A DNA stretch of 64,000 nucleotides from the NCBI GenBank assembly GCA_051294905.1, contig CM119372.1, positions 32,302,001 through 32,366,000 of the forward strand, in the 5' to 3' direction. Source of the stretch: Botryllus schlosseri (Eukaryota). The position numbers and the translations under genes are program-made. Below, piece by piece: positions 8,069 through 30,864 of this stretch (positions within the stretch are counted from its first letter, which is position 1; the number at the start of each line of letters is the position of its first letter). The notes beneath the pieces are model-generated. The model searched no databases. It was given only the letters and a program-made list of their open reading frames with translations, and was not told where the DNA came from.

Positions 8069-8328
8069 GAAATTTCTACAAGACCAGCTGCCGCGGCTGC
8101 TTAACCCGTTACTTGGCACGATCTCTTCACCGTCGCACTTGCTCGACGCGATTAGGCAGTCATGCAGAGAACGAATTTTAGATAGTTGTCAGCCGATGTT
8201 ATGAAGGAAATGTGTCTAAGTTTCGTTCTCTGCGTGACTGCCTTATCGCGTCGAGCAAGTGCGACGAAGAAGACATCGTGCCATGTAACGGGTTAAGCAG
8301 CCGCGGCAGCTGGTCCTGTAGAAATTTC
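8069..8328. repeat. Long inverted repeat, ~114-bp arms with a 32-nt spacer
   Basis: 8069-8182 is the reverse complement of 8215-8328 with about ten mismatches. Confidence 0.9.
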
Positions 8329-8555
8329 GGATCACATGCACTATACGCCGTCATTTCCCGTACACAGGGAACACGAGTAAAACAATGAATCCCCATGTGC
8401 ATTAATGATTCCCCATGTACATCCTTTTCTCCAAATGCCTTTTTTCTTTTTCATTCTCTCGAATTTCCAATGAAAAAGTGCTGACTCAGCGTATTTCTAG
8501 TTACGAGGTTTGAGTTTTTTCCGTCTGCTCCCATTGTAGAGCATTTCGCACCTCT

Positions 8556-11500
8556 TCATAATGTACAATTTTCTTGCCTTATAATCTCGGCAGGAATGGG
8601 TCCTTTGCATAGTATCACCTCAGGGTTTTGTGATTGTAGCAGAATGAGCCCTCTGCTTCTGGCTTCTGCAGCATTCACGTGAAAAGCAACATTTTTCATT
8701 TTTGATTTCCGCGCCTTTGTCTTACTCAGATGAATAAATTTCCTATTAATTCGTTCAATGCCCAATAATACGATGTGTCTCGCATTTGATTTAGTCGTCA
8801 TGTGGTACAATACGTCGTTACCTCTGTACTCCTTATACGGGGGAGGTGTTCCTCTGGTGTGTCCGTGTGCTGCGGCCAGTCCCGCGTCCGAAACTATAGC
8901 CCTGTCACACTTTCTCATGATGGTTTTAATTTCTTCGATATCCATCCGCATCCCTAGTTTTCTTTCGATTATTCGACATGTCTCTTCCCAAGGGTGGTAT
9001 CCATCGATTGAGTCATTGCAGTGCTCGTGTCGACAGTGAAACATCAATGCTCGTTGTATTTTTCCTTCTCGGGGCATTGTCTGCGGATACAGAGGTTTCT
9101 CATGTTCCGGAATCATGGTCCAAACGTGTGGATCGTCTTCCCCCGCGGCCATCTCCATCCAGTAGGATCGAGATAATCCATCTGACGTGAACACCTGCAA
9201 CGTACTTAGATGAATTACCTCCTTTATCTGAAATCCTGAGAGGTGATTTAGCCATCTCTGAATCAAAGGTTTCGGACTCGGATTTTTTGCCTTATCTGTC
9301 GTCCTTTTGAGAAGCCCAAATACTCCCGTGTTATCGGTGATTATCGTGAAGGGTAAAGCTCTCAACATTGACTGCCATTTTTCCACCGAATCCTTTAGGG
9401 CTTTCAATTCTTTTGTGCATTGATCATAGGCTTTTGCCGCTGAAGTTGCCCATTTCTGACTGTAATAAGCGATTGGGTACACCTTTCCAAAAGGCGGTTT
9501 GCCCCCCACCTCCGTTTGAAAGATTATAGAACCAAATCCTATTTCGGAGGCATCCGTTTCCACAAAAATGGGAAGATCAGGATCCAAGTGGTACAATACC
9601 TTAGTATCATCGAGGGATGCTTGTGCCGTTTTGTAATCTTCCAGCAATTCAGCGGTCCACAGTACCGGCGTCACTCGCCCTTGAGTTGCCGGGACCTTTC
9701 CTGTCAAAGCATCGAATTTTGCTAGCTTCAAGCTCAATTCTGGGATATGTTCAGAGATGTAGCGGAGAGCGCCAATCCACCCCCGTAACTCATATATATT
9801 GTGGGGTGGGGAAAGTTCTCGTAAAGCCCTTATTCGTTCGGGCTGAACTTCAATTTCTTTTCCCGTTAAGGTTGCTCCCAACAGGTTTACCTTCTTCTTT
9901 CCAATGAAACATTTGTTAATGCTCACCGTCAATTTCATTTTGGCAAGTTGTTCAAATAACAGACGCAAGAGCAGCAAATGGTCGTCTACTGTTTTTGTGC
10001 TAAGAAAAATGTCGTCTATGTAGGCCTCCATAGGCGTCGCATTCTCCTCATCCGACCGGCCATTTTGCTTCATGTGTTGTTGGTATCTTTCCGTGATGGG
10101 TTTCACTACGCATTCCTGCATATTCGCGCTCCAAAAAGCTACAGCTGTTTTGAGCCCCATTGGCATTTTACGCCATCTTACGTGCATCCCTTTGATGGCT
10201 ATACCCACATATTGCTTAGACCTTTCCGTGACATCCATGTGGAAATAGGCCTTCTTCAGATCCAAGAGAGAAAGTACTTCTCTTCCTTGGGCGAGCTGTT
10301 TTACATCTGGCACTAACGGCGGAGGTACTTCTATTGATTTTATAGCCGCATTTAGGGGTTGTAGATTCTGTACGACCCTCCATGCTTGTTTCCATCCGTC
10401 CTCCTGCTTCTGCCTCTCATTCATTTTCTGAGGAACAACAAAAATAGCTAACTTCCATTCGGCAAAACCTTGTTCGATGACGCCTAAATCCAGGAAGTTC
10501 TCTACCGCCTCCTTTAATGCCTTTGCCTGGCCCTCCCCCTTTAGATTATAAGGACCAGAAACAAAAGGCTTAGTTGAAGGATCCTTAAGCTCGATGTCGC
10601 ATGGATACTTCATAGTCTGTGGGGCGCCAAGGTGGCCCCGTAGGTCTTCGAGTTCCGACGCAAAAGGCGCGTAGACGGCTTTCCAGACATCATCTGGAAT
10701 GATTGTGTTTTCCGGAGTTGTCAAGTCAGGAGGTTTGTACGGGAGTTTAGCCAGTGCTACTGATTGTGCACAGAGGTTCTCGAGTTCCGTTTTTACGCTC
10801 GCATTGGTGTCCTTTTGTAGAATGTATGTGGTAACTGGGCCAGCCATAGGCTGATACGACTTTCGTGATGTTCGGGGTTTTGGTGTTGGTGGAGAGAGGG
10901 CGAGGTCCTTCGTTGTCAGCGGGGATTCCCTACCTTTCCAATCTGACCTCTGAGCTCGGTGCGTGCCCGCACTTACCGTCACGCCGACGGACTCAATCTC
11001 CGCCGGGGGCCCTATTTCTGGGGAGACGTGCATCCTAAAATCCCCAGACTCCTCGTCGGTCATATCCAGACCCGTGTCCGGTTGACCGACGATAGCTGCT
11101 TCGTTAATACCTTTTGGGAATGTAGTTAAGACATGAGCTGCCGTAATGCTACTATGGGCCGAACAGTTACATTTGTCCGGACAAGTGCATCTACGAGAGC
11201 TTTCAGGACCAACTCTCTCGCGTGGGTCCTCATTTGCGCCAGCGGGGATTCCACACTCGACGTCTTCAAGAATAGTGCCAGCAGGGATTCCTGACTCGAC
11301 ACTTGGAGTTTCCCATAGGTCTTGTGTGACGTTAGTTGCGCTTTTCAACTCGTCGTTCGCGCCAGTGGTGATTACCATCTCGACACTTGCGCCAGCGGCG
11401 ACGGCTGGCAACGATGGCCAGCGCGCCGATTCGACGCTTACCTGATTTGCAGCTTCCATCAACCCATCGTTGGTCGCAGTTTTGCAAAGACTGCTTCCGA

Positions 11501-12041
11501 CTTTGGTTCCATTCCGTTGATCACACGAGATATCGTGGTATAATGTTAACAAAGACAACTCTTCATTTGCGTTAGACGGAGTTTTGAACTCAGTCGCTAT
11601 GTTTGGTAATTGCTGTACCTGATCAATCCATTTCAATCCCACAATATTGAGCGGGACCCCTTTCCCGGTCGCAAATGGAACCGACAGACCGTCAAAATCG
11701 ATTACTACCAAGGAATCAACGTGGGATGAGCCACCTATACCACGTAATTTCATGTCTAAGGGTTGGCGCTCATCCCAACTTCGTGGGTATTTAGTCTTCG
11801 CGACATTTTTCATTATCAAATTGGGGATGCTTCCCGCATCAGCCAGGAATTTTGTACCAGTAGTTGTATCAATTAAATACAAGAGTTGGCCGCCGAACAG
11901 TTCCGTGAAATCCGGCTGCAAAGGGTCATCCGGTGTATCAAGGAACGTAAATAGGGGTAGGGAATCATTATGTACAATTTTTGCGTGTTGGGGTAGTAAA
12001 TTATCTGGGAGCTGATTCACCGGATCAATCAGCACCCCCAT
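8556..12041 (-). CDS. pol: Pol polyprotein, Ty3/gypsy-like: PR, spacer, RT, RNase H, IN Zn-finger remnant, Tpt1/KptA-like domain
   Basis: PR FLADAGS...IVGL; RT LDLKKAYFHM, MPMGL, YIDD, KVNLLG; RNase H ETDAS, PIAYYS, KEL, TDN, DGLSR; no DDE core; C-terminal YHMT...RKFIHLS...SQNPEVIL. Confidence 0.95.
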   Translation of the reverse strand: MGVLIDPVNQLPDNLLPQHAKIVHNDSLPLFTFLDTPDDPLQPDFTELFGGQLLYLIDTTTGTKFLADAGSIPNLIMKNVAKTKYPRSWDERQPLDMKLRGIGGSSHVDSLVVIDFDGLSVPFATGKGVPLNIVGLKWIDQVQQLPNIATEFKTPSNANEELSLLTLYHDISCDQRNGTKVGSSLCKTATNDGLMEAANQVSVESARWPSLPAVAAGASVEMVITTGANDELKSATNVTQDLWETPSVESGIPAGTILEDVECGIPAGANEDPRERVGPESSRRCTCPDKCNCSAHSSITAAHVLTTFPKGINEAAIVGQPDTGLDMTDEESGDFRMHVSPEIGPPAEIESVGVTVSAGTHRAQRSDWKGRESPLTTKDLALSPPTPKPRTSRKSYQPMAGPVTTYILQKDTNASVKTELENLCAQSVALAKLPYKPPDLTTPENTIIPDDVWKAVYAPFASELEDLRGHLGAPQTMKYPCDIELKDPSTKPFVSGPYNLKGEGQAKALKEAVENFLDLGVIEQGFAEWKLAIFVVPQKMNERQKQEDGWKQAWRVVQNLQPLNAAIKSIEVPPPLVPDVKQLAQGREVLSLLDLKKAYFHMDVTERSKQYVGIAIKGMHVRWRKMPMGLKTAVAFWSANMQECVVKPITERYQQHMKQNGRSDEENATPMEAYIDDIFLSTKTVDDHLLLLRLLFEQLAKMKLTVSINKCFIGKKKVNLLGATLTGKEIEVQPERIRALRELSPPHNIYELRGWIGALRYISEHIPELSLKLAKFDALTGKVPATQGRVTPVLWTAELLEDYKTAQASLDDTKVLYHLDPDLPIFVETDASEIGFGSIIFQTEVGGKPPFGKVYPIAYYSQKWATSAAKAYDQCTKELKALKDSVEKWQSMLRALPFTIITDNTGVFGLLKRTTDKAKNPSPKPLIQRWLNHLSGFQIKEVIHLSTLQVFTSDGLSRSYWMEMAAGEDDPHVWTMIPEHEKPLYPQTMPREGKIQRALMFHCRHEHCNDSIDGYHPWEETCRIIERKLGMRMDIEEIKTIMRKCDRAIVSDAGLAAAHGHTRGTPPPYKEYRGNDVLYHMTTKSNARHIVLLGIERINRKFIHLSKTKARKSKMKNVAFHVNAAEARSRGLILLQSQNPEVILCKGPIPAEIIRQENCTL

Positions 12042-12050
12042 GCGTTTTTT
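12007..12050 (-). promoter_or_regulatory. -1 programmed ribosomal frameshift signal (gag-pol)
   Basis: A AAA AAC at 12050-12044 is in gag phase (TCA AAA AAC); pol is in the -1 frame; downstream hairpin GGG-T-GCTGATT...AATCAGC-T-CCC. Confidence 0.85.
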
Positions 12051-14872
12051 GAGAGTCGAATGCCTTGATTCAGTTCATCATCCGTCCAATATGAAGCGTC
12101 ATATCGACGTGGACGATTATGATATTGTGGTTCCGTCCAGGCCACCTGGCTATTACCCTGGGTTTGGTGTGCAGGCGGTCCTTGAGGACCCCATTGATCC
12201 CTATCATGCCAGTGGGTTCTATCTCGATTTTTTGGCCTGTTATCATAATAGGCTTCACACAAAGCGGTCCTTTGTGTAAATGAGGGAGATCCTTGCGTGG
12301 CAAGATACTGGTCAAGACCCTCAATCGTTAGCATGTTATTTCTTGTCAGGAAAGATTTCCAATTACGTTCCGCCGATTCTTTGACGCTTGGGGGCACTGG
12401 ACGTGCTCGCGTACGAACTATCCACCCCTGGTGTTCATCATAGGCGAGAACCTGATTGTTTAGCCAAAGTATAAATTTAGCCACACAACTACGGGACTGA
12501 TGTCCCGGGGCCTTACAGTAATAACACACCGAGAGTGACTGGCCTTGAGAGGGATTCAAATACAAGCCTAGAGGTGCGAAAATATTAGGGTTTCCAAGAA
12601 AATTGTACCTCTCACCTTGGCTCTCCGCAATGTTGCGGGCCTCCCGGCTGCTAGACGGAGTAATTTGCGAGCTGTCTACGCCCATTCCTGAGTCCTGTGT
12701 GTTCGCCATTCGAGGACTACGGTTTGAAGTGCTTGACCTTTGACTAGAACGTCGTGGTCCCGTGGTTTCGGGCGGCGCATTACGAACATTTGGAGGTCGC
12801 TCTTGTCTTGACCTCGGGGCCTGTACTCTTCTGCCGCGTCCATTTCCATTCATGACGTGCGTGGGTGGACGGTTGATCCGAGCGTTACGGAGTGGATTAC
12901 GGCGTGGTAGAGGGGTTTGGCCCGTGCCGGTCAGTCGTCGTGGTGACATTTGTCTTGGCGGTCCAGGGGGTGTCCCGCCCAAGACATTCGGTGGCGGCTG
13001 GGGTGGGGGTGATTGCGCCATTGGCGGCGGTGTCACACCTGGTGGTGGTGGAGGAGGAGTATCAAGTCGTCCATCCTCGCCACCGTGGGTCGGATAGCTG
13101 TGTACTATTGGTCCTGCAGGCTGAACATTATATATATGTACCGGCGGTAGGGAAGGCTTCGTTTCACGTGTTTGACCAGTTCCCCGATTCTTGGAACGCG
13201 TCTCCTGTTCGTCCAGAAATTCGGAGTTCCAAACAAGCTGTAGTTCCTCCGCAACTTCCCGCCAAGTCTTTTTTTCTTCCCAGCCTCGTAGCATTAGTCT
13301 GAGTGCCTCTGGTAATCGTTGTCGTAGATTTCGGAAAAGTCGCAGTCCATCCTGGTTATCCTTAATGTCACTTTCCATGTTTATTTCTAATTGTTTCAAG
13401 GCGCTATTTAGCAGCGGTAGGGGTTCGTCCTCCCAGCGGTAATTTCTACGGAAATCCCCGATGATCTTTTCATCATTTACCAAGCCCTGAGGGTTGGATA
13501 AAGAAAGGGATCTCATTACCGAAGCCCACTCTGCTTCCCCCGAATTTGTGTTGAAGAAATTCCCCAGTTGGGTTGCCTGCTTGTGGCGGCCAGCATCCCT
13601 TAACTTCTTCTGCATGGCGTTTGCCAAAATAACATCAGCATCCGTGTTTCCTGGGCCGTGACGTATTCGTCTCATCGAATTTGCCATCCATTTCAGAAGT
13701 GGCATGTCTCCAGGATCCATCATAAGCTGAAGCATCTCTTTTTCCGATTGGGGTTTAACGGGTATGGTGATCATCGGGGTTGTGACACCAGGTTGTTGTC
13801 GTGACCGTTGTGTCCCAGACCTTACACCATTATCTTTTGGAGTAGAAGTAAAACGAGGCATATTAGGGTACCCGGGGCTGTGAGATTGGCCCTCATCAGA
13901 ATATTCGTCAGTAAAATCATCATGGCTGTAGCTGTCTTGGAGTGACTTTTGGTAATTTCTTATCTCTTTAGCCAGACGTCGCATTCGAAAATCGATGTCG
14001 CCACTCTCTGAATTGTTCTCCTCGTTTCGCTGGTCCTCCTGTTCCAGAAATGTCACACGTCTAGATTCGCCATCCGCACTTCCTGCCCTCCTTCGAGAGT
14101 CTACCACTGCCCTACGACGGTTCTGGCGGTTTTGCCATGCCCGATAGCCTTTATACTTGTCCAGAGGGCCCTCTTCAGGATCTGACTCGGCCCGGGATTC
14201 GTCTCCCTCAACCCTGACAGTGTTCGGTATTTCGCCGGGACTCCCTTTTTTCTGCTTGGCACGCGCACCGCTGTCCACATGAAAACACGGTGTCGTTCCC
14301 TTACGGGAGCCTAACAACGCGGTCGGCCCTGAACTAGGTATCGTAGGGTATACAGCCTTTACCGTATGGCAATCTAAACCTTTCGTGACCGTCATTGTAG
14401 GCATTTGCGTTACGTCGTGTAATGACTGTTCAGTAAGAGGATCGTACGCTGGAGGATCGTAAGCTGGTGCGTTTGGTAGTACAGTCAAAACAGGAGTTGG
14501 AGTTCTTTCCTTTACAGCTTGCGCATGTGATTTTCCGAGGTCGAACTCTGACGCAAGAATTTCATTTAGTACTTCGGTAGAGACTTTCCCGCTAACTTTT
14601 GTGGTGGCATCGCACACAGCTTTGAGGTCCGCTTGAGCTTTTCGTACTTCTTTCTTTGCCTTTTCCAGCCCTTTCATAGTGTCGGGCAGGGTCGTCTTAA
14701 CTTCTTTTAATAAATCTGCTTGTTCAGCAACATCTTTAGCAAGTTGCCTTTCTTGTCGTCGAACATCATCATGACGTTTTTGCGTCGCTTTTAGCAGCCT
14801 GATTCCTTGTTCGAGCTCGCTGGCCGCTTCTGACGACTTTTTCCTTTTAAACCTTCTTAACATTCTTCGCAT
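12029..14872 (-). CDS. gag: Gag-like polyprotein, 947 aa
   Basis: N-terminal coiled coil, PPAY motif, proline-rich region, CCHC knuckle CYYCKAPGHQSRSC; directly upstream of pol. Confidence 0.9.
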   Translation of the reverse strand: MRRMLRRFKRKKSSEAASELEQGIRLLKATQKRHDDVRRQERQLAKDVAEQADLLKEVKTTLPDTMKGLEKAKKEVRKAQADLKAVCDATTKVSGKVSTEVLNEILASEFDLGKSHAQAVKERTPTPVLTVLPNAPAYDPPAYDPLTEQSLHDVTQMPTMTVTKGLDCHTVKAVYPTIPSSGPTALLGSRKGTTPCFHVDSGARAKQKKGSPGEIPNTVRVEGDESRAESDPEEGPLDKYKGYRAWQNRQNRRRAVVDSRRRAGSADGESRRVTFLEQEDQRNEENNSESGDIDFRMRRLAKEIRNYQKSLQDSYSHDDFTDEYSDEGQSHSPGYPNMPRFTSTPKDNGVRSGTQRSRQQPGVTTPMITIPVKPQSEKEMLQLMMDPGDMPLLKWMANSMRRIRHGPGNTDADVILANAMQKKLRDAGRHKQATQLGNFFNTNSGEAEWASVMRSLSLSNPQGLVNDEKIIGDFRRNYRWEDEPLPLLNSALKQLEINMESDIKDNQDGLRLFRNLRQRLPEALRLMLRGWEEKKTWREVAEELQLVWNSEFLDEQETRSKNRGTGQTRETKPSLPPVHIYNVQPAGPIVHSYPTHGGEDGRLDTPPPPPPGVTPPPMAQSPPPQPPPNVLGGTPPGPPRQMSPRRLTGTGQTPLPRRNPLRNARINRPPTHVMNGNGRGRRVQAPRSRQERPPNVRNAPPETTGPRRSSQRSSTSNRSPRMANTQDSGMGVDSSQITPSSSREARNIAESQGERYNFLGNPNIFAPLGLYLNPSQGQSLSVCYYCKAPGHQSRSCVAKFILWLNNQVLAYDEHQGWIVRTRARPVPPSVKESAERNWKSFLTRNNMLTIEGLDQYLATQGSPSFTQRTALCEAYYDNRPKNRDRTHWHDRDQWGPQGPPAHQTQGNSQVAWTEPQYHNRPRRYDASYWTDDELNQGIRLSKNAWGC

Positions 14873-14880
14873 AGCACTTC

Positions 14881-15228
14881 CTATTGGCTGGAGGAAGTAC
14901 TATTGACAGCTAGTTGTATATCAGAAGAAGATTCGTCAAAAAATGACGTTGATCTGGGTGACGTAGCAGTAGACGTAGAATTGGCGTGAATAAGCGTAAT
15001 TTCACTACTGTTCTCCGTTGGTCCTGGCGACGCGCTGGTAGGTGTAATATTTGTAGTGTTTAGCGTGGATTCACTACTATTTGGCCCAACAATTGCGTTC
15101 AACAGATCAACAAACGCTCCTGGCGACACGTGTAAATAAACTGCTGCCAACGTAATCAGGAGAGATACAAATGATGAAATCAAGGATATGACAAGTACCA
15201 ATTTTGCGATAGTCGTCTTAGAGAGCAT
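14881..15228 (-). CDS. ORF0: small type II membrane glycoprotein, 115 aa from the first ATG
   Basis: MLSKTTIAK, then a hydrophobic helix, then an S/T-rich tail with six N-x-S/T sequons; lies between PBS and gag. Confidence 0.65.
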   Translation of the reverse strand: MLSKTTIAKLVLVISLISSFVSLLITLAAVYLHVSPGAFVDLLNAIVGPNSSESTLNTTNITPTSASPGPTENSSEITLIHANSTSTATSPRSTSFFDESSSDIQLAVNSTSSSQ

Positions 15229-15257
15229 CGATTGGTCAACGTCTGGACACCGGAAGT

Positions 15258-15275
15258 ATCCCAGTGGTGCCTCCA
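15258..15275 (-). promoter_or_regulatory. Primer binding site, tRNA-Thr type
   Basis: TGGAGGCACCACTGGGAT matches 17/18 the complement of vertebrate-type tRNA-Thr(AGT) 3' end as recalled (TGGAGGCACCGCTGGGAT); preceded by CA plus a 2-nt spacer. Confidence 0.85.
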
Positions 15276-15277
15276 AT

Positions 15278-16430
15278 TGTGTTTAAAGTGCGGCTCCGAT
15301 AACGATCGTTATTGCGAGTAGTCCACACTTGGTTCGGTATACTTCGTGGTACAAAGTTGACTCTTTCTTTTACTCTTGACGTACTCAGATGTTGATTGAA
15401 GCAATAGTAGTTGTAATGTTGTTTCTTGTCAAGTTGACAATGACCTTGAGGTCCAGAATTCTAAACTAACCTTGATAACTGGTAAGCTTATACCTTAATA
15501 CAACCAAATACTCCAATCGTTATCATGCAGACAGAATGAGGTATCTAAGCAAAACTCGGTTAATATTGGCATATAGAATATCCATCAATTATAACACAAG
15601 ATAAAGCTTAAACCTATTCATATTCATGCACGAATTAATGTATTTTAAATACTCCAAGGTTTGTTTTCGCATATAAACTATGCGACGGCCTTTCCTGCCG
15701 AAGTGGTATCTTTCAGGGTTTGTTAACACATAACTAATGTGACGGCCTTTCCAGCCGAAAAATAGCTCATAGGTTTGTTTACACATATAATGCATGTGAC
15801 GGCCTGTTCTGCCGTAAAGCAGCTCCAAGGTTAGTTTACACACATAATGCATGTGACGGCCTGTCCTGCCGTAAAGTTCATTTATGACATATCGCTACAT
15901 TGTACACCATTCAATCACAATAGTCATGCACGAACTAATGTTTTCTGTTATATCTCTGGGTTCCTTTAGTATCGGTGTGTATAAGCTTTTTATTCATTCG
16001 TATGTACCGTGTCTCACAAACAATAGATTTGATTTACCACGAATCTTTAACTCTACACATGCTCCAATAAGGTAGAGGTTCCTAGCTTAGTCTAAGGGTG
16101 CGTAGCTAGTTATAACGCGTAACTCCGGGAGGTTCCAACATTAAGGACTTCTTATCGTTGACCCGATTAACATGGCCATATGCCAATTAAAGTGCACTTG
16201 TTGATACTACCCTTAACAAGGTGTTGCTTATTCGAACACTGTTAGATACCCAGGGTCCCTTTTACGGGTTTCTGAAGAATACCCTAAACATTTCTAATCC
16301 TAGGCTTCTATCCCGCTAGGGTGAAGGGTCCCGACACTAATATAGGGCGTGGTCGGTGTATAACGCCTAATTAAAGCCTACAGGCGTAGTACTCGCTATA
16401 ATGTTACTGTAGTAACAACCAATTATTCAC
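15278..16430 (-). repeat. LTR-like region; U5 end CA at 15278, far boundary undefined, no second copy in window
   Basis: aaacaCA-AT-TGG junction; candidate AGTAAA poly(A) signal near 15370-15375; enhancer-like tandem repeats. Confidence 0.55.
15652..15876. repeat. Four tandem ~56-bp repeats, U3 enhancer-like
   Basis: Core g(c/t)gacggcct.t.c.gccg.a recurs four times. Confidence 0.85.
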
Positions 16431-17589: not shown

Positions 17590-18455
17590 ATGGTAGTGCC
17601 CTAAACGTTTTGTAAAATCTGTCCGTCTTACCCAGGATCTAAAATCAAGGTACGGAGCTGTATCCATTGTGGATATCGTCCTTAACATTTTGGAAAATCT
17701 GTCCGTCTTATCCAAGATCTAACATCAAGGTACGGATCTATATCCATTGTGGATATGGTCCTTAACATTTTGGAAAATCTGTCCGTCTTATCCAAGATCT
17801 AGAATCAAGGTACGGATGTATCAATTTTAGTAAGCCTTAACGTTTTGGAATATTTGACGGTCTTCTCCAGGGTCTAGCACCGAGGTACCGATATATATTA
17901 ATTATAGTGGCCCTAATCGTTTTGGAAAATCTGTCCGTCTTATCCAGGATCTAACATCAAGGTACGGATGACTATTGATTACAATAGTAGCCCTAAACTT
18001 TTGGAATATATTTCGGTCTTCTCCAGGGTCTACCACCGAGGTACCGATATATATTAATTATAGTGGCCCTAATCGTTTTGGAAAATCTGTCCGTCTTATC
18101 CAGGATCTAACATCAAGGTACGGATATATATTAATTATAGTGGCCCTAATCGTTTTGGAAAATCTGTCCGTCTTATCCAGGACCTAACATCAAGGTACGG
18201 ATATATATTAATTATAGTGGCCCTAATCGTTTTGGAAAATCTGTCCGTCTTATCCAGGACCTAACATCAAGGTACGGATATATATTAATTATAGTGGCCC
18301 TAATCGTTTTGGAAAATCTGTCCGTCTTATCCAGGACCTAACATCAAGGTACGGATATATATTAATTATAGTGGCCCTAATCGTTTTGGAAAATCTGTCC
18401 GTCTTATCCAGGACCTAACATCAAGGTACGGATATATATCCATTGCGGATATGGT
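17590..18455. repeat. Tandem array of ~11 units of 77-80 bp
   Basis: Unit cgttttggaaaatctgtccgtcttatccaggacctaacatcaaggtacggatatatattaattatagtggccctaat; exact 77-bp period at 18151, 18228, 18305, 18382. Confidence 0.95.
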
Positions 18456-18489
18456 TCTTTTTGTTGCCATCTTGTTCGACGCAACGCTT

Positions 18490-20390: not shown

Positions 20391-20843
20391 CTACAGTTGG
20401 TTAGCATATTCTCGTATTAACGGGAATGCAACGTCAAGTAATTCTTCCGTTGAAAGTAATAATGCAATCGGAGATGTTACGTCTAGATGAGGAATACGAG
20501 ACGAAACTACATTCTCATGGATATGATCACTTATTGGATGCAGTCCCACGACGAATGTATACCAACAATATTGAGCACTTTCAAATTGTTCCAACACTAA
20601 CATTCTAGCGACTGCACAATGTTTATCATATATTGCCTTCCATAAACTGTCCGAGGGGGGTTTTCCGAAGCATTTCTTCAAGTATGTAGACATTGTTGCT
20701 TTTATAGTACCCATTGATGAAGCTGCCCATTCATCAAAACTCCTGTTTTGATATTCCGCTTCAAATATATCAAAGTATTCATTGATTTCTTGTTTTGCCT
20801 CTTCTACCTCCCAAGTCTTTACCGTAATAGTTTCATTAGACAT
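20391..20843 (-). CDS. Orphan family A protein, copy 1
   Basis: Shares W..E.AK..I..Y...FE.EY..R.FD.W and A.Y.W.....LHP with 22117-22521 and 22518-22973. Confidence 0.75.
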   Translation of the reverse strand: MSNETITVKTWEVEEAKQEINEYFDIFEAEYQNRSFDEWAASSMGTIKATMSTYLKKCFGKPPSDSLWKAIYDKHCAVARMLVLEQFESAQYCWYTFVVGLHPISDHIHENVVSSRIPHLDVTSPIALLLSTEELLDVAFPLIREYANQL

Positions 20844-21023
20844 ATTCGATATGAGTTTTAGGCACTAAACACAAAAGATCTTATGACTCTATGGCTCTAT
20901 GACTATGACCGATAGGGTTTGCACGAAAGATTATGTGCATCTACAAATGAATCACGCATACTATGTATGTTGATGACGCGTTTTAGCTATTTTGTCTTAC
21001 TTAATGGTACGCCACCCATGGAT

Positions 21024-21479
21024 TCACTTAGCATACATCTCAGTCCAGTCTCGTGCCGTTTTCTGATAACGATCGAAATTATCTCGATACATCCTGGCAC
21101 TTTCTTCATCCATTGGATCATCAGGATTCGGAGAAGCCAGAAGTGAAGAAATCGATATTAATATCATTACCAAAGTCAAAACTGGAGACCACTTATCAGA
21201 GAGGATGTCGATGCAAATTGTACCCTTTCGACTTATATTTGGATGAAAAATCTTCGTATTGAATGTAATTTTAGGTGGTTTGAAGGGATATTCCGTGGGG
21301 AATTCAACTCTCATATGGAATGTCCCTCCATCGTACGGTGTTTCTGGTGGTCCACACAACATCGCATGCCAAACAAAGATATCTGATTCATCGAAGGGCC
21401 CCGCTTGCAAAATTGCGGGATTTGTTTGGATTTCTCGAGCGATTTTTAGTCGTTCGAAATGTAGTCTTTTCTTCGCCAT
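21024..21479 (-). CDS. Ubiquitin-conjugating enzyme E2, UBE2D/E-like, intronless; start MAKKR
   Basis: YPFKPPK, HPN tripeptide, active-site Cys in GTICIDIL, WSP, PNPDDP. Confidence 0.95.
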   Translation of the reverse strand: MAKKRLHFERLKIAREIQTNPAILQAGPFDESDIFVWHAMLCGPPETPYDGGTFHMRVEFPTEYPFKPPKITFNTKIFHPNISRKGTICIDILSDKWSPVLTLVMILISISSLLASPNPDDPMDEESARMYRDNFDRYQKTARDWTEMYAK

Positions 21480-21547
21480 TCGACGTAGTACTATGCTATC
21501 AATTAATCTTATATATGCAAAAAAAACAAAAAATGGGAAGATAGGTA

Positions 21548-22000
21548 TTACCAAAACAATCTTCTGTCTATCGCATACATATCACGTGAAAGACTTGCAA
21601 TAGTTCTACGCGAAATGTGCCAATCCTCGTCAACATTAACCATGGCCAATATATAGAGTAGAAATACATACAGGTAGTATGCAGGACTTTCCCCAAACTT
21701 TTCCTTCACAATACGTTCCAACATTTCGTTAGCACATTTCAGTTGTTCTCTCACCTCCTGGTCCCGGTATAGCCAAACGAGGAAATCCTTCAATACGAAT
21801 TCCATGTCACTAGCTGTCATAGTCGGAAAGTTTTTCACTTTTTCTCTTATCCGTTCATGTACAATCCCAATCCTCAGCCATGCAACTCTGCTGTCAGGAA
21901 TTGTAGGATATGGACATGGTTTAAATTTGTTGCGATCCAATCCCTTTCTTTGGGGATCCTTGAGTACATATGAATAATTCTCACCATATACTTCTAGCAT
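21548..22000 (-). CDS. Orphan protein, 150 aa
   Basis: ATG-initiated ORF tightly packed in the same-strand cluster; no motif recognised. Confidence 0.6.
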   Translation of the reverse strand: MLEVYGENYSYVLKDPQRKGLDRNKFKPCPYPTIPDSRVAWLRIGIVHERIREKVKNFPTMTASDMEFVLKDFLVWLYRDQEVREQLKCANEMLERIVKEKFGESPAYYLYVFLLYILAMVNVDEDWHISRRTIASLSRDMYAIDRRLFW

Positions 22001-22116
22001 TTTACTTTTGTAGTTTCCTTAAATATATAATTCCTGGTTATAAATGACCCACCCTTTTAAATCAAACATAAACAATCAATTTTCATCCAAACGTACGTCT
22101 AGAACTCAAAACATGT

Positions 22117-22521
22117 TTAATTAGGTTCCAAATGTGCTCCTATCCATTGTATTGGGAAATCATCTTTCATGGGATGCATATGGACAATATGTTTGTACCA
22201 AAGAAATTTGGCTTCTTTATAGTTTCCCAGAGTTATGATCGCAATTCGATTATGTTCTTCAATAGCGGCTTGATATCCAAAAGCTTTTCCTTGTAAGGAC
22301 AATGAATTCCTATAAACTTTGTCCACGTACGGCGTCAACATTCTGACAATGTCGTTCGGTCTTGTCATAGCCCATCTTGACCACCTGTCGGATATTTCTA
22401 CGTATTCTTCATAGTATTTACAGAACATACCAAAATAGAATTTAAAATCATTTGCTGCCGATTCATGTTCAATCTGTATCCATTCCCTTTTACTTATAGA
22501 TTTTCGAGGCATACCTCTCAA
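22117..22521 (-). CDS. Orphan family A protein, copy 2 (diverged)
   Basis: W...E...A...F..YF, RW, EH..IA...L.N...A...W...IV..HP pattern. Confidence 0.7.
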   Translation of the reverse strand: MRGMPRKSISKREWIQIEHESAANDFKFYFGMFCKYYEEYVEISDRWSRWAMTRPNDIVRMLTPYVDKVYRNSLSLQGKAFGYQAAIEEHNRIAIITLGNYKEAKFLWYKHIVHMHPMKDDFPIQWIGAHLEPN

Positions 22522-22973
22522 TCGTGTAAAACAACAATTTTTGCAAAAGCGACTTCTAAAATCGGAATAGCAACAGTTTTAAATTCTCGTTTAGTTAATA
22601 GTAACGCCGTAGGGGTTCGCAAATTCATTTGCGGTAAGCGTTCATCCACAAACTCTTTGGGTAAATATTCGTGAGCTGGATGCAGCTTGAAGATGAGTCC
22701 GAACCATGTGTATTGGGCCTGATCAAAATTTTTCATAACAAAAACACGAGCAATTTCACCGTGAGCGTTATAAAGCCTATCAAGTAGTTCGGGGTTTACA
22801 TCCGCAAAACATAGGTGTAGATATTTAGCCAATAATTGTTCAAATTTTTCTTTCGGAGTAGCTTTCCATTTATCAAAATTTCGATGATGATATTCTTGCT
22901 CGAATGCATCTTAGTATTTGCTGATTTGTTGTTTAGCTAGCGTAATTTCCCAATTTTCTAACACACTAGTCAT
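22518..22973 (-). pseudogene. Orphan family A, copy 3, with one premature TAA at 22913-22911
   Basis: MTSVLENWEITLAKQQISKY*DAFEQEYHHRNFDKW continues in frame into ORF 22518-22832 and aligns with copy 1. Confidence 0.8.
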
Positions 22974-22988
22974 CTTAATACAACAAAA

Positions 22989-23849
22989 TCACATTGAAAT
23001 CATATACTCAATATCACAAGTAAATGATTCGTAAGAACAAGGATGAATAGTATAATTCTGCACTGTACATGTTCTGGTCGTAAAGTTTCTTATTGTGCCT
23101 CTAAGTCCCAAATCATCTTGACAATGCCAAAATTCAGATTTATTTATCATTATATCATCAACATTTCCAAGAACATCGTAGTAAGATGTTTTTGGAATTA
23201 TGGTATCCGTTGCCTTGGATATTGCCCCCCTCAGTAATTCATATATCATTAATCTTCTCCCGAAATCTTCCTGCAGATCACGAGTTGAAAGTATGACATT
23301 TATCATATTATTAATGCTTTCCAGATCTTGCGGTGATACATGAGGGTATAAACCTTCCGTCACGAACAATTTGTTCTTGCTCAAATATGGTATCTCTTCA
23401 TCATTCATTCCAGGTCCATCCGAATCCAAAATTTCTTCCAATGTCTGTTTGAAATAAGTATGATCTCCTTCATATTTGTCATCAGAATCACTCTCCCGCC
23501 CATCCATATCCGGCCAATACTGTTGTACAGGGGAATGTATCATCCAATCCTCTCGTTCCACGATCAATTCCCAAACCTTATTGAGAAAGTCTTGTTGTTG
23601 GTTTTGATCCTTTCCCGTAAGTTTACGAATATCAATGGCTTTCAATGATTCATAAATTCTGCGTATGTTACGGCAGTTTTGTTCGACAGCATCCTCGACT
23701 TTCAAAGTGTGACCATACCTGTCACGTACATTTTGAAATTCTATCATACTAGTACCCATTTCTCCAAAACTTAATAACAAAAATTTTAGAATTGAAACAG
23801 CCATCCCAGTACACCATACGCACTCAAAACTGCAGTATTCACTAATCAC
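22989..23849 (-). CDS. Orphan family B protein, copy 1; true start probably downstream of the GTG
   Basis: C-terminal IYELLRGAISKATDTII...WHCQDDLGLRG motif shared with two other ORFs. Confidence 0.75.
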   Translation of the reverse strand: MISEYCSFECVWCTGMAVSILKFLLLSFGEMGTSMIEFQNVRDRYGHTLKVEDAVEQNCRNIRRIYESLKAIDIRKLTGKDQNQQQDFLNKVWELIVEREDWMIHSPVQQYWPDMDGRESDSDDKYEGDHTYFKQTLEEILDSDGPGMNDEEIPYLSKNKLFVTEGLYPHVSPQDLESINNMINVILSTRDLQEDFGRRLMIYELLRGAISKATDTIIPKTSYYDVLGNVDDIMINKSEFWHCQDDLGLRGTIRNFTTRTCTVQNYTIHPCSYESFTCDIEYMISM

Positions 23850-23950
23850 CTCTTCAAAATATGAGCACTAACATATTAAAATGTTATTTTTGCTAGGTAA
23901 ACTAGCAATATACCAGCCTAGCAACAAGATTAATAGTCCTGCCTGTCCCG

Positions 23951-25639
23951 TCAAGCTCTATACACTTTGATTTTCTCGCATATCTTTACATCACAGATGA
24001 GGCATCGTTCTACATTGGTCGCGCACCTTTCACAAGAACATAGGTGTCCGCAGGGTATGAAAGTTACTTCACTCCTGTTTTTCCTGCATTGTTGACAAAA
24101 CACAGTCTCTTGTACTTCTTTTATACTTTTGGCGAGATCCTCTGTAGAAATAGATTCCGATATAGCTTCATTCTTCATTCCTTCTCTGGCACTTATGTCA
24201 CTATTTTTTTCAAGGATATTAGTTACTCGATGGTTTGTCGTTTGTGGATTAACCGATGTAATACTTGGTGTCGTAAGTAAGTCTTGAATAATGTCCCTTA
24301 ATTCACCACGGAAACCATTGTCTCGTCTGTTGATAGCTCTTTCTATTTGTCCTCTCGTAAATCCCATATTTTCCAATTGCATCCTTTTTCCGTATTCTTC
24401 AAGCGAGCTTGTCATGTTTCGACGTCCCTCGTCCTGTAGCTCGTCCAGACATATCCCATTCCTTATCGAAGGTCGATTAAGATTGGGGTGTTCATTCTTC
24501 AGGCGCAATACGAAATCAACGCCTTTCATTTGAAAAACGTACTCGCAACCTGGGAACCACTTAGCATGTTCTGTCCATGGTTCGTCGTTGTAATCCCAAT
24601 TTTGCAAACCTCCGTTACAATAGAAACACTTTGTCTTATCTGCATTTCCAAGGAAAAACAGACCAGCTCTCGCCAACTGTTCAACTGGCGCAAGAATTCT
24701 TTGTCTTGGCCATTTATCGTTAAAGGAATCTATTCTTTGTTGCAACGTCATCATATGTGAATTTATCGGATATAGGCAAGGAAATCGTTCAATCAACCTA
24801 AGCTGTTCTTCCGGTGAAGGTTCCGGCGGTTCTCCAGTATTAGTCGTTAACCTCTCAATTTTTTTTCGAATATTGTCATCCGCTTGATTCCTTTCAGATT
24901 CCGTCATTGGTACATTTCCCGTATAGTCGTCGTTTACAATCCTGCACTTGGCAAAATGTATTTGATGTTGTTCGATTATATTATCAGTAGGTGCCCAGTT
25001 TCGAAGTACTCCCGAACACGAAAAACATTGTGTTCTATCTAGGTTTCCAAGATAGAAAAATCCTTGTTTGGCTAATTCCCCCACCAAATATGGAGCAGGG
25101 TAGGATGGCCATTTGTCAAAGGTTTTCCTCCTCTCGAACTCACTTCTCAAATTCATGGTTCGCAGTAATATCTCATGTTCTCGGTCACAAATATTAGCGA
25201 ATATGGTTTGTGGTAATTGATGCTCCAGCTCTCTGGTAGTTGTTCTTCTTGTATCCCGATCAGACCGAGTTCTTGTGAAGTTAAAGTTACCCCTTATGTG
25301 TCCAAAAAAAATCCTCGTAGAACAGTTCGAAATAGTCACGTTGTAGCCCTCTCGTCCCGACACCATACTGCAAGTAGCTTCATGCCAACGATTGTCCAAG
25401 ACATCGTCTTCAATGTCCCAGTTTTCCACGCAAATGCCGCAGCCAAAGCACTTTACTATATCTTTATATCCCGTCCAATAAAAACCCGCAGCTGCCAGAT
25501 AAATCGGCATTACAGGAATTTCCTTAGGATAATGTTTGAACGTTGCAAGTCTATAATTTTCCACCCAATGATTCCCAGGTGGTATATAGGTACAGTTCTG
25601 ACCAGGAAGATCGCGATCTCTGTTTGTACGGACCCCCAT
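23951..25639 (-). CDS. Inhibitor of apoptosis protein: 3 BIR + UBA-like + RING, intronless
   Basis: BIR2 and BIR3 have canonical CX2CX16HX6C; BIR1 is degenerate; MGF UBA motif; C-terminal RING CQQC...PCGH..CERC...CLIC. Confidence 0.95.
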   Translation of the reverse strand: MGVRTNRDRDLPGQNCTYIPPGNHWVENYRLATFKHYPKEIPVMPIYLAAAGFYWTGYKDIVKCFGCGICVENWDIEDDVLDNRWHEATCSMVSGREGYNVTISNCSTRIFFGHIRGNFNFTRTRSDRDTRRTTTRELEHQLPQTIFANICDREHEILLRTMNLRSEFERRKTFDKWPSYPAPYLVGELAKQGFFYLGNLDRTQCFSCSGVLRNWAPTDNIIEQHQIHFAKCRIVNDDYTGNVPMTESERNQADDNIRKKIERLTTNTGEPPEPSPEEQLRLIERFPCLYPINSHMMTLQQRIDSFNDKWPRQRILAPVEQLARAGLFFLGNADKTKCFYCNGGLQNWDYNDEPWTEHAKWFPGCEYVFQMKGVDFVLRLKNEHPNLNRPSIRNGICLDELQDEGRRNMTSSLEEYGKRMQLENMGFTRGQIERAINRRDNGFRGELRDIIQDLLTTPSITSVNPQTTNHRVTNILEKNSDISAREGMKNEAISESISTEDLAKSIKEVQETVFCQQCRKNRSEVTFIPCGHLCSCERCATNVERCLICDVKICEKIKVYRA

Positions 25640-26089
25640 ATTTATTTTTTTTCCTTAAATTCTATTTTTCGGTGTAGTAGTACATGGCAGAACAGGCATT
25701 CATCTATACTAGGTCGAGGTGATGGTCTCTCAGGTGAATATACCTTATTTACTCAATTCCATCATAATCATACAATTGTTCTGTACACAACACGGAGACA
25801 AGATAAATAAAAACATTGCACAATAAAATATCTCAAACTTGTAACAAGAGACTCTCTAACAAAACTTCAACAACATTTCACATTCAACATCTCATACCAT
25901 TCTCCTTGTCTCACCAGGTGGTTCTAATCAACATTATTTTTCATTTGATATTTCAATCTAATGGAAGAACGATAATAATATACAATTTTTTCATAGTTCA
26001 CGATTGATATGGCCCGCATTCCAAGTGATTTAGCAATCTCCATGGGTTAGAGGTTAGGCCGTCGTTTAATCATTTTGACAAATGAACAC

Positions 26090-26908: not shown

Positions 26909-27150
26909 TTATTTTCAAACAAGCCGCATCCGTACCAATATCAACCGCTTTTTTATTTTTTATTTTTTTTTATTTTTATTTTTTTTAGTTAAGGAAAACA
27001 AAGGGCATATGAAATAGGATACTTGACTCCGGTACTCAAAACCGGCTGCTAACTCTTTAATATATACAATTTCCATCTTTAGTCAATTTCCAAGATAGAG
27101 GCATTCATGTTAAACAAATTTGATACTTTCAACAAATGCTATATCCAATA

Positions 27151-28098: not shown

Positions 28099-28172
28099 TT
28101 TCAATTTATAAAGTATACACTCCAGTATAACGTAGATTCTGTATATACAAAAAAATGAAACAATGAGCGTTT

Positions 28173-28679: not shown

Positions 28680-28795
28680 ATTAATGGTCCCAGCTATGTT
28701 ATTACTATGGGTTCCTTATACAAACACACACCATATAAGTTGGATAGAACAAATCACACCCAATAAATCAAAACCCTATCATCGTTACTCAAACT

Positions 28796-29827: not shown

Positions 29828-30012
29828 ATTGTTTGTTTCGTTAGTAACTTATATAATCAAACATAAGACCATTAATACCCGTTCAAAATTTGCACCAATG
29901 AATCAGTAAACCCATATTTTCATGCTGCATGGAGCAATATAAACATCAACTTTTCAACCCAATATCTTCATATATACACCTTCTTTAATGTCGATCCTTA
30001 CTCTGATATCAA

Positions 30013-30561: not shown

Positions 30562-30733
30562 TCTATTTCCACTAAAACATCTTAAATTTTAAGATAATTT
30601 AATTCGATATATACAGTTCATAGTATTATAGAATCTATCCACAAGCACTTCACAACATATTCCGTATACATTTAACTTTGTCAAATATTCATATTCATTT
30701 GAACAATAAATCAACAAGAATAATCAGAACCCC

Positions 30734-30805: not shown

Positions 30806-30864
30806 TAGGGCAATACGTACTTGCTCCCGATGTTAAATGATACAACAAGCCTTTAGACCCAATT

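Follow-up and report, generated by a model that had tools for sequence, protein, structure and literature searches.

A Tpt1/KptA-type domain at the end of Pol in an integrase-less, gypsy-like retroelement family

The locus described here raises the question of what an RNA 2'-phosphotransferase-like domain is doing at the end of a retroelement Pol, at the point where an integrase would be expected. An earlier note had drawn attention to such a domain, of the Tpt1/KptA type, at positions 8556-8815 of the 64-kb stretch of DNA that was analysed (the window), and had read its peptide as being in frame with reverse transcriptase (RT) and RNase H. This reading holds, as the peptide is the last 86 codons plus stop of the ORF at 8556-12041 on the minus strand, and the plus-strand frames of 8556-8815 give only stops. 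The region is almost certainly the C-terminal Pol domain of an intact minus-strand retroelement that is kin to both Ty3/gypsy elements and caulimoviruses and whose gag and pol are apparently joined by -1 frameshifting (Table 1), the domain being inherited and selectively maintained in an integrase-less family that occurs in several invertebrate-type assemblies.

Table 1. Coordinates of features at the locus (aa and residue numbers refer to Pol)
Feature	Position	Strand	Remarks and basis
Tandem repeats, 4 x 57 nt	15647..15896		5' of gag
Small ORF abutting gag	14881..15276	-	Predicted single-pass membrane protein with N-glycosylation sequons
gag-like ORF, 947 aa	12029..14872	-	Intact; one CCHC zinc knuckle (12485-12529); homologous to gag ORFs of relatives
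-1 frameshift heptamer A_AAA_AAC	12044..12050	-	Canonical, in gag frame, just 5' of gag stop
pol ORF, 1161 aa from first ATG	8556..12041	-	Intact; protease, disordered linker, RT, RNase H, Tpt1
Retropepsin-like aspartic protease (aa 50-155)	11577..11894	-	D68-A-G70 active site; conservation, AF2/Foldseek
Reverse transcriptase (aa 551-725)	9867..10391	-	Y-I-D-D motif (Y674, D676, D677); Pfam RVT_1, 60.5 bits
RNase H, Ty3/gypsy type (aa 795-958)	9168..9659	-	Pfam RT_RNaseH, RT_RNaseH_2; invariant columns
RNase H-Tpt1 linker (aa 959-991)	9069..9167	-	Acidic W-M-E motif conserved across family; alignment
Complete Tpt1/KptA domain (aa 992-1150)	8592..9068	-	Pfam, PDB profile, AF2, Foldseek
Tpt1 N (RNA) lobe	8832-9068	-	
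Tpt1 C (NAD+) lobe	8592-8831	-	
Tetrad R1004	9030-9032	-	
Tetrad H1005	9027-9029	-	
Tetrad R1047	8901-8903	-	
Tetrad R1100	8742-8744	-	
NAD+ contacts H1080/T1082	8796-8804	-	
NAD+ contact H1104	8730-8732	-	
Hairpin, 260 nt, near-perfect	8069..8328		114-nt arms, 92% complementary; 228 nt 3' of pol stop

Both sequence profiles and structure prediction identify the domain. With the whole Pol as query, Pfam PTS_2-RNA (PF01885) matched aa 992-1147 over positions 3-177 of its 177 with 32.6 bits, the cut-off being 26, and the C-terminal 264 aa alone gave 36.6 bits (E 6e-9). A protein word search with the C-terminal region alone returned nothing. In the PDB, Tpt1 chains were the only sequence matches, and a profile of the family likewise hit no others there (E 2e-11). 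The AlphaFold2 (AF2) model of the domain has a pLDDT of 88.9 and a pTM of 0.80, and its best 22 Foldseek matches are all Tpt1/KptA proteins, of archaeal, bacterial, human and mouse origin, with TM scores of 0.74-0.79 across about 180 columns; a different fold first appears at E 0.09. Pfam, and AlphaFold with Foldseek, which the earlier note had proposed as checks of the fold, bore it out. The note had held the RNA-binding N-lobe to be absent, and this was wrong, because the model and its match to full-length Tpt1/KptA show both an N-terminal RNA lobe and a C-terminal NAD+/ART lobe, and the whole enzyme is present, including the Arg-His dipeptide of the catalytic tetrad. The interval 8556-8815 was therefore rightly assigned to the domain but covers its C-terminal (NAD+) lobe only.

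[quoted passage not shown] It differs from them in being fused C-terminally to RT-RNase H, whereas the cellular enzyme is a free protein of about 180 aa, in having Met or Trp for the Gly of HGT, in an N-lobe signature of the elements' own, H-x-R-H-x-x-C...H (H1002, C1008, H1016), and in an identity of only some 17-25% to any cellular Tpt1. Conservation was counted over 18 element sequences, with denominators that vary by column. The tetrad, as defined previously (PMC10622864), is conserved at R1004 in 13 of 14 sequences, and at H1005 (14/14), R1047 (17/17) and R1100 (16/16) in all of them. The same is true of the NAD+ contacts H1080 (17/17), T1082 (16/16) and H1104 (16/16), which belong to motifs, the HGT His/Thr and H-H-V, whose roles have been described (PMC10415124). 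These catalytic residues share alignment columns with those of cellular Tpt1; R1100 corresponds to PhoTpt1 R115 in pairwise alignment, and R1047 falls on the tetrad arginine in profile and multiple alignments, being two residues off in one pairwise alignment. Judging from its sequence, the Pol-borne Tpt1 is apparently enzymatically active. That HGT reads HMT here had been seen before (the Met is M1081 of Pol), and this is typical of the family, in which the middle position is M in 9/16 and W in 5/16, as against G in 37/45 cellular Tpt1 proteins. In solved TRPT1 this Gly makes backbone contacts only (PMC10415124). Nor have the elements conserved a Lys and a Tyr that in archaeal Tpt1 help to enclose the 2'-phosphate, and given these two differences the substrate specificity may have shifted from that of the cellular enzyme.

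The remainder of Pol is that of a retrovirus-like element. The kinship of the protease was revealed by the fold search alone, since a sequence profile of the region found no match in the PDB. Across aa 50-155 the pLDDT of its AF2 model is as high as about 90, the best 40 Foldseek matches of this model are all retroviral proteases, D68 and G70 are invariant in 6 Pols, and the relative P0177 has a Pfam RVP match above cut-off. The solved RTs nearest by sequence are those of cauliflower mosaic virus (8r0s, E 2.8e-19) and Ty3 (4ol8, E 2.8e-12). In the RNase H, D830, E878, D903 and D954 are all present, and in the linker that follows, where AF2 confidence is low, W961, M962 and E963 are invariant in 4 Pols. 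The frame of pol is -1 relative to gag, with an overlap of 46 nt, and in L002, L003 and L008 the heptamer T_TTA_AAC is found at the same place as that of the window element, and the hairpin that comes after it bears compensatory changes. A -1 frameshift appears to yield Gag-Pol, and because these signals are present, translation of pol from its own ATG, as in pararetroviruses, is unlikely. The small ORF abutting gag is a possible part of the element; it has no Pfam match, and no relative of it was found. The hairpin 3' of pol (-209.7 kcal/mol, z -25.9) was not found in relatives, and may either belong to the 3' UTR or have inserted separately. One unit weakly similar (64%) to the 57-nt repeats lies at 8333-8365, in the 3' region. 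A 1103-aa ORF at 60573-63884 on the minus strand was considered as a second copy of the element and is unrelated to Pol.

No DDE integrase was found, as neither rve nor Integrase_H2C2 matched the window Pol, the antisense ORFs or the flanks, and there was none in any of the related Pols examined or in their neighbouring ORFs. Pfam likewise gave no tyrosine recombinase, GIY-YIG or other endonuclease in the window element. By repeat search and self-BLAST there is no direct repeat flanking 8556-15276 in the whole window, and LTRs are also lacking in L001-L003. Terminal inverted or split repeats were not found at the window element, and its noncoding flanks had no match in related loci. In neither the window nor 7 related loci were ribozymes (hammerhead or self-cleaving), other Rfam families or tRNA genes found, and the Tpt1 domain has no 2H phosphoesterase, RNA ligase or macro domain as a partner. 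A non-LTR (LINE-like) affiliation was rejected on the gypsy-type RT/RNase H and the missing endonuclease, and one with DIRS, Ngaro or Penelope-like elements on the lack of a recombinase or GIY-YIG domain, of inverted or split terminal repeats and of a ribozyme; kinship with the Troyka elements (PMC12440569) was dismissed because these have both an integrase and LTRs.

The window element has the gag and pol of the Metaviridae, the order within pol being protease, RT, RNase H, and beyond the family the best database matches, with about 25% identity, are Pols of gypsy elements. The family shares with Ty3/gypsy elements a CCHC gag, a gypsy-type RNase H, -1 gag-pol frameshifting and, in some relatives, an optional env-like ORF3. 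It differs in that no member examined has an integrase, in the lack of LTRs in the window copy, in having Tpt1, with or without an ExoIII/APE1 nuclease, in the integrase slot, and in head-to-tail arrays at two loci (L004 and L006). Endogenous caulimovirid copies are often head-to-tail arrays as well, and the Caulimoviridae further resemble this family in being reverse-transcribing, in their gypsy-like RT-RNase H and lack of integrase, and in the nearness of the cauliflower mosaic virus RT. Unlike them, the elements reside in an animal-type genome, use a -1 frameshift for Gag-Pol, carry a Tpt1 domain and have neither a movement protein nor any other caulimovirid gene, and no free viral form was found in IMG/VR. 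Scans of IMG/VR viral contigs and JGI metagenome contigs found no relatives, and no protein identical to the window Pol turned up in an exact look-up.

That the fusion is an accident, whether a one-off recombination or assembly chimera with host TRPT1 or a decayed and inactive relic, might be suspected from the low identity of the domain between lineages (20-34%) and from the fact that some members score below the Pfam cut-off. A search for further RT and PTS_2-RNA fusions, which the earlier note had recommended, showed that the fusion is not confined to the window, but is shared, in frame and in one and the same position, by at least 9 Pols from at least 6 assemblies (the window Pol, P0001, P0002, P0003, P0174/P0038, P0175, P0176, P0177 and P0178), besides fragments (P0026-P0037). 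The catalytic residues are essentially invariant, the ORFs of the window are intact, and the Tpt1 domains of the elements form a clade distinct from all cellular Tpt1, the nearest cellular matches being scattered archaea and bacteria with similar scores. This distribution and conservation refute an accidental origin and leave it hardly any probability. Between L002 and L003, pN/pS, used instead of dN/dS as synonymous sites are saturated, is about 0.4-0.55 for Tpt1, 0.65 for the disordered linker and 0.12 for RT, and the Tpt1 domain evolves about three times faster than RT. At least one gene model annotated as a "probable RNA 2'-phosphotransferase", XP_039263204.1 of Styela clava, which is among the fragments, is of the element type and points to an annotation trap.

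The slot at the end of Pol is not filled alike throughout the family. In L004 the Tpt1 domain is followed by a C-terminal ExoIII/APE1 nuclease of the cellular type, in L007 a dUTPase takes the place of Tpt1 and is accompanied by an EEP domain, and one metagenomic protein has Tpt1 domains together with a normal integrase. At this position the ExoIII/APE1 and dUTPase of these sister lineages resemble further modules for cleaning up nucleic acids. The earlier description of a Tpt1-fold domain where integrase should be is right in that the domain ends Pol, in the integrase slot, with no integrase found, but "in place of integrase" is a statement about position only, because sister lineages put ExoIII/APE1 after Tpt1 or a dUTPase there. 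One might suppose from this position, and from the failure to find an integrase, recombinase or nuclease in the window element, that Tpt1 functionally replaces integrase in genome insertion, for example by preparing or joining DNA ends at the target. We know of no Tpt1 enzyme that cuts or joins DNA, and a lineage that retains Tpt1 and adds a separate nuclease, like the metagenomic Tpt1-integrase protein, indicates that Tpt1 coexists with insertion enzymes and is not a substitute for them, so that such a role is very improbable. The Tpt1 domain does not account for the way in which the cDNA of an element lacking integrase gets into the chromosome.

We tentatively propose that the domain is packaged as part of Gag-Pol and acts in cis, and that its most likely job would be NAD+-dependent removal of a 2'-phosphate from the RNA that serves RT as template or primer. 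Because it belongs to Gag-Pol, Tpt1 would be packaged together with RT and RNase H, and would act on the element's own nucleic acids. In the canonical two-step reaction, the 2'-phosphate removed would be either internal, at a ligation junction, or terminal, at an opened 2',3'-cyclic phosphate. Since it would otherwise block copying or extension by RT, Tpt1 would be an RNA "healing" module. Animals join RNA mainly with RtcB, which leaves no 2'-phosphate, and the source of one on the element RNA is hypothetical for this reason. Also counting against a healing role are the lack of a ribozyme and of a ligase, 2H or macro partner, the changed HGT Gly, the unconserved Lys and Tyr, and the fast evolution of the domain. 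A precedent in its favour is that KptA domains embedded in the polyproteins of invertebrate RNA viruses have been read as serving RNA-end processing (PMC9503650).

The main rival to phosphate removal, put forward in the earlier note, is that the domain is a one-step ADP-ribosyltransferase capping the 5'-phosphate ends of element cDNA or RNA fragments, which arise for example after RNase H primer removal, and so shielding them from exonucleases, ligation and sensing. ADP-ribosylation of 5'-phosphorylated DNA and RNA by Tpt1/TRPT1/KptA is regarded as their main reaction in mammals and bacteria (PMC12678800, PMC10415124); it would suit the reverse-transcription complex equally well, an integrase-less element has free cDNA ends to manage, and the His/Thr contacts to the adenosine ribose that it needs are invariant. 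Structurally the model comes closest to KptA-DNA-NAD+ complexes, but this nearness reflects their closed conformation rather than substrate preference, and no ADP-ribose-removing partner (macro, NADAR) is encoded. In Runella Tpt1 it is step 2, the release of the phosphate, that selectively depends on the second arginine of the tetrad (PMC10622864), and as capping alone would not require this residue, its invariance in the elements (17/17) slightly favours true phosphate removal; capping is a possibility that we consider doubtful. A role in counter-defence, which the earlier note also named, or in host manipulation, in which the domain would not serve reverse transcription itself but repair element or host RNAs cut by host RNases to cyclic-phosphate ends, modify host RNAs or consume NAD+, appears rather unlikely. 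In its favour, the KptA proteins of viruses are usually interpreted as repairing RNA in the conflict between virus and host (PMC9503650), and a Foldseek search of BFVD found the Tpt1 fold in giant viruses, picorna-like viruses, a baculovirus and a nidovirus of a tunicate. The domain also changes faster than RT/RNase H does, and sister lineages fill the neighbouring slot with dUTPase or APE1-type modules. Tethered to RT-RNase H, however, the domain is better placed to act in cis inside the particle than to reach host targets in the cytoplasm, there is no ligase or 2H domain alongside, and the active-site residues are strictly conserved and not diversifying.

Removal of 2'-phosphate can be extended to a more speculative and distinctly improbable scheme, in which the elements are an undescribed, integrase-less, possibly enveloped pararetrovirus-like lineage of marine invertebrates. 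Template RNA would be joined or circularised by a pathway of the tRNA-ligase type, the 2'-phosphate left at the junction would be erased by Tpt1 so that RT could read through, and repeated passage of RT would give multimeric cDNA, which would account for the head-to-tail arrays in L004 and L006. If this were true, NAD+-dependent RNA repair would be an obligatory step in the life cycle of a retroelement.

The earlier note knew of no retroelement Pol with a Tpt1 domain, and we found none in the literature searched; a retrovirus-like Pol without integrase that ends in Tpt1 is a family-wide combination undescribed there. A survey of KptA domains reports none in retroelements (PMC9503650), and Tpt1 is unmentioned for rotifer LTR elements with extra ORFs (PMC5408684) and in a survey of env-carrying gypsy elements of metazoans (PMC13524379). 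Invertebrate virus-like replicators have recruited Tpt1/KptA in the polyproteins of a Botrylloides leachii nidovirus and a Beihai picorna-like virus, and as stand-alone proteins in sawfly nucleopolyhedroviruses and Bodo saltans virus (PMC9503650, PMC11848433; Foldseek BFVD), but these carriers are RNA or large DNA viruses, and none is reverse-transcribing. The capture of a nucleic-acid enzyme into Pol has parallels in the dUTPase of some retroviruses and rotifer LTR elements and the AlkB-type demethylase of orchid gypsy elements (PMC5408684, PMC9289625), and a sister lineage of the present family has dUTPase at the same position; Tpt1 differs in not being among the described accessory domains and in coming with the loss of integrase.

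Captured dUTPase, chromodomain and AlkB modules in Pols each revealed a step of host dependence or conflict, and the presence in Pol of a Tpt1 that is conserved and apparently active implies that, in these elements, a 2'- or 5'-phosphate on nucleic acid matters during reverse transcription. To our knowledge, no current model of retrotransposition includes a step of this kind. With this family one can also ask, in a natural context, what Tpt1 does in animals, whose tRNA splicing does not need it, a long-standing question in the Tpt1 literature cited here. A gypsy- and caulimovirus-like lineage apparently without integrase or LTRs, with interchangeable Tpt1, ExoIII/APE1 and dUTPase modules and with env-like genes, extends the range of reverse-transcribing elements known from animals.

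By profile, predicted fold and catalytic residues, the domain that ends Pol belongs to the Tpt1/KptA family of RNA 2'-phosphotransferases, which bears out the earlier note. The interval 8556-8815, to which that note assigned the domain, comprises the final 86 codons of the minus-strand pol ORF; a plus-strand reading was ruled out by stops there. The Pfam PTS_2-RNA (PF01885) match extends over positions 3-177 of the 177-position profile, with scores of 32.6 bits for the whole Pol and 36.6 bits for its last 264 amino acids, against a curated cut-off of 26 bits. A plain sequence search of all PDB chains with these 264 residues returned Tpt1/KptA entries only, as did a domain profile from four related elements (E 2e-11). 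The AlphaFold model of the domain, built on a 41-sequence alignment, has a mean pLDDT of 88.9 (>90 for residues 31-200) and a pTM of 0.80, and its best 22 Foldseek matches in the PDB are all Tpt1/KptA proteins from archaea, bacteria, mouse and human. These align at TM-scores of 0.74-0.79 across about 180 columns, the entire enzyme, and the next fold appears only at E 0.09. The RNA-binding N-lobe is thus present, contrary to the note, whose interval covers the NAD+ lobe only; the full-profile match and the structural alignment cover both lobes.

We compared residues in an alignment of 18 element-borne domains and 45 cellular Tpt1 proteins. The Tpt1 catalytic tetrad is Arg14-His15-Arg62-Arg115 in the Pyrococcus enzyme, and its second arginine is selectively crucial for chemical step 2 (PMC10622864). 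R1004, H1005, R1047 and R1100 of the window Pol occupy these columns, with conservation in 13/14, 14/14, 17/17 and 16/16 element sequences, respectively. In solved TRPT1 structures the NAD+ riboses are bound by three residues, His and Thr of HGT plus the second histidine of H-H-h; the HGT Gly makes backbone contacts only (PMC10415124). The corresponding H1080, T1082 and H1104 are invariant in the element sequences. The HGT motif does read HMT, as had been noted, and since Met or Trp stands at the Gly position across most of the family, this is, on the alignment, a family trait and not decay. H1002, C1008 and H1016, which surround the catalytic Arg-His of the N-lobe, are nearly invariant in the element family and variable in cellular Tpt1; we speculate that they may form an extra metal-binding or structural site.

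The domain assignments give Pol the order protease, RT, RNase H, Tpt1. The protease region is modelled at about 90 pLDDT, its best 40 Foldseek matches all being retroviral proteases; the RT retains Y-I-D-D and the RNase H all four acidic residues. Integrase is indeed lacking, as had been claimed: Pfam detected no integrase, recombinase or nuclease domain in the window Pol, antisense ORFs or flanks, and no LTRs or other terminal repeats were found for this copy within the entire 64 kb. Relative to gag, the pol frame is shifted by -1 in all members. Three related loci (L002, L003 and L008) have T_TTA_AAC where the window copy has its canonical heptamer, followed after 2-5 nt by a hairpin of 10-13 bp, which compensatory changes preserve in L008. 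The heptamers of L004 and L006 are non-canonical. The frame, the heptamer near the gag stop and the hairpin point to -1 frameshifting, with a Gag-Pol fusion as the most likely form in which Pol is produced. In that case the particle would contain Tpt1 alongside RT and RNase H.

Features of the window and of related loci
Feature	Position	Strand	Remarks
gag-like ORF	12029-14872	-	947 aa, intact; CCHC zinc knuckle; directly upstream of pol
pol ORF	8556-12041	-	1161 aa, intact; ORF reading
Retropepsin	Pol aa 50-155	-	invariant D-x-G, AF2 fold, Foldseek
RVT_1	Pol aa 551-725	-	Pfam
RT_RNaseH	Pol aa 795-958	-	Pfam
PTS_2-RNA (Tpt1/KptA)	Pol aa 992-1147	-	Pfam
Full Tpt1 domain	8592-9068	-	both lobes
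Family-specific H1002/C1008/H1016	8994-9038	-	alignment
Heptamer A_AAA_AAC	12044-12050	-	gag frame; few nt before gag stop
Small ORF	14881-15276	-	predicted single-pass membrane protein; several N-glycosylation sequons; ends 9 nt before gag ATG
Near-perfect 260-nt hairpin	8069-8328		114-nt arms, 92% complementary; 228 nt downstream of pol stop
Four 57-nt tandem repeats	15647-15896		upstream of gag
Separate satellite	17594-18460		about 11 units of 77-80 nt; beyond 57-nt repeats, further upstream
Uninterrupted host-like ORFs	20391-33079	-	one strand; several without Pfam match
IAP-like protein	23951-25639	-	triple-BIR plus RING
IS1595/ISXO2-like DDE transposase	27151-28278	-	
Leucine-rich-repeat protein	28796-29827	-	
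ORF, 1103 aa	60573-63884	-	signal peptide, Ser/Thr-rich middle, C-terminal membrane anchor; no Pfam domain
L004 Pol	L004:721-6727		RT, RNase H, Tpt1, ExoIII/APE1-type nuclease
L006 array	L006:1-23243		three units, 97-99% identity
L007 (sister lineage)	L007:8001-10472		RNase H fused to dUTPase in place of Tpt1
P0041 (metagenomic protein)	L005:238-3249		two canonical Tpt1 domains, then integrase zinc-binding, rve, SH3

The search for other fusions of RT with PTS_2-RNA was successful. The same in-frame RT-RNase H-Tpt1 architecture is found in related proteins P0001 (47% identical to the window Pol), P0002 and P0003 (36-38%), P0174/P0038, P0176, P0177, P0178 and P0175, the last representing a cluster of 215 sequences, besides many fragments (P0026-P0037). 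Sources include at least six ENA assemblies (ERZ781364, ERZ21736675, ERZ22157276, ERZ25067590, ERZ1755870 and ERZ25067576, the last counted for a Tpt1-less sister lineage), with Logan and JGI fragments additional; this spread rules out a one-off fusion in the window copy. Neither IMG/VR nor the JGI metagenome contigs contained a relative, and no free viral form was found. P0030 is XP_039263204.1, a 198-aa NCBI model from the tunicate Styela clava named "probable RNA 2'-phosphotransferase"; it matches the element profile at E 4e-35, falls within the clade of the retroelements and is probably a Pol fragment, not host TRPT1, because it starts in the element-specific linker. When 1.84 billion representatives were searched by profile, sequences of the elements (E 1e-89 to 1e-14) preceded all cellular Tpt1 (from near 1e-13); the nearest cellular matches come from scattered archaea and bacteria and do not point to one donor. 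Between the intact copies L002 and L003, non-synonymous and synonymous proportions (pN and pS) were 0.32-0.34 and 0.62-0.82 for the Tpt1 lobes, 0.10 and 0.82 for RT, and 0.32 and 0.49 for the disordered linker. With pN below pS, the Tpt1 domain is, judged from this comparison, under constraint, yet evolving about three times faster than RT.

No family Pol contains an integrase, and in the related loci the ORFs after Pol are different genes. Downstream of Pol, L002, L003, L006 and L008 carry an ORF with a CUB domain and a glycoprotein-like ORF3 of about 1100 aa; the ORF3s of the four loci are homologous to one another. The window ORF at 60573-63884 matches the same stretch of about 100 aa of this env-like ORF3 in L002, L006 and L008 (E ~1e-6 each) and is possibly a distant relative, or part of another element copy running past the window end. 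The L004 nuclease matches bacterial exonuclease III (E 1.8e-42) and human APE1 (~1e-32) and resembles cellular repair nucleases more closely than LINE endonucleases; the next ORF encodes an alphavirus-E1-like class II fusion domain (5e-19). L007 has a separate Exo_endo_phos nuclease ORF downstream of its dUTPase Pol. Tpt1 and integrase can coexist, as the domain set of P0041 indicates; its Tpt1 lies outside the element clade, and its 3.4-kb contig is too short to show RT.

L001-L003 lack LTRs or terminal repeats. Units are arranged head to tail in L004 (period about 9.3 kb) and L006 (about 13.8 kb); unit A of L006 breaks off inside ORF3, the second L004 Pol is shortened by a transposase insertion, and the Pol of L009 is interrupted once. 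Membership of the L006 Pol in the 215-sequence cluster implies high copy number in that genome. The closest solved RT by sequence is that of cauliflower mosaic virus (8R0S, E 2.8e-19), before Ty3 (E 2.8e-12), and, outside the family, animal gypsy Pols are the best database matches, with identities of about 25%. The window element works like gypsy-type retroelements, but the integrase and LTRs that define LTR retrotransposons are both absent, as are the hallmark enzymes of LINEs, DIRS/Ngaro and Penelope-like elements. Array formation and the absence of integrase are features in common with caulimovirids, although no episomal form is evident.

The hairpin downstream of pol is single-copy in the window, folds as RNA at -209.7 kcal/mol (z -25.9), overlaps one sub-threshold miRNA-precursor match in Rfam and was not found in relatives. 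One unit at 8333-8365 is weakly similar to the 57-nt repeats. No homologue was found for the small ORF before gag.

The literature searched, with many subscription-journal papers and Repbase reports outside its coverage, held nothing relevant on Tpt1, KptA or PF01885 and retroelements, in agreement with the earlier note that no such Pol was known. A survey of NAD+/ADP-ribose systems in viruses describes KptA as uncommon in viruses of eukaryotes, and there is no reverse-transcribing element among those it lists (PMC9503650). The Tpt1 fold has two known outcomes, two-step NAD+-dependent removal of a 2'-phosphate and one-step ADP-ribosylation of a 5'-phosphate end (PMC10622864, PMC12678800, PMC10415124), and the chemistry open to the Pol domain would be NAD+-dependent attack by a nucleic-acid phosphate. 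Neither accounts for cDNA insertion without integrase.

The role that we tentatively favour would be to clear 2'-phosphates from template or primer RNA. There is no evident 2'-phosphate source, searches of the element and related loci found no ribozyme, ligase, 2H or macro partner, and some of the residues that enclose the 2'-phosphate in the archaeal proteins are not retained. The main rival, which is less likely, is that the domain caps 5'-phosphate ends of cDNA or RNA with ADP-ribose. Less probable still is a role in counter-defence or RNA repair, for which analogous KptA domains in invertebrate RNA-virus polyproteins offer a parallel (PMC9503650; BFVD matches). Phosphate removal is preferred because the tetrad is invariant throughout, step-2 arginine included, because Tpt1 is tethered to RT-RNase H, and because sister lineages carry clean-up enzymes at the equivalent position. 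As Tpt1, Tpt1 with ExoIII/APE1, and dUTPase alternate after RNase H, this slot holds interchangeable nucleic-acid "hygiene" enzymes.
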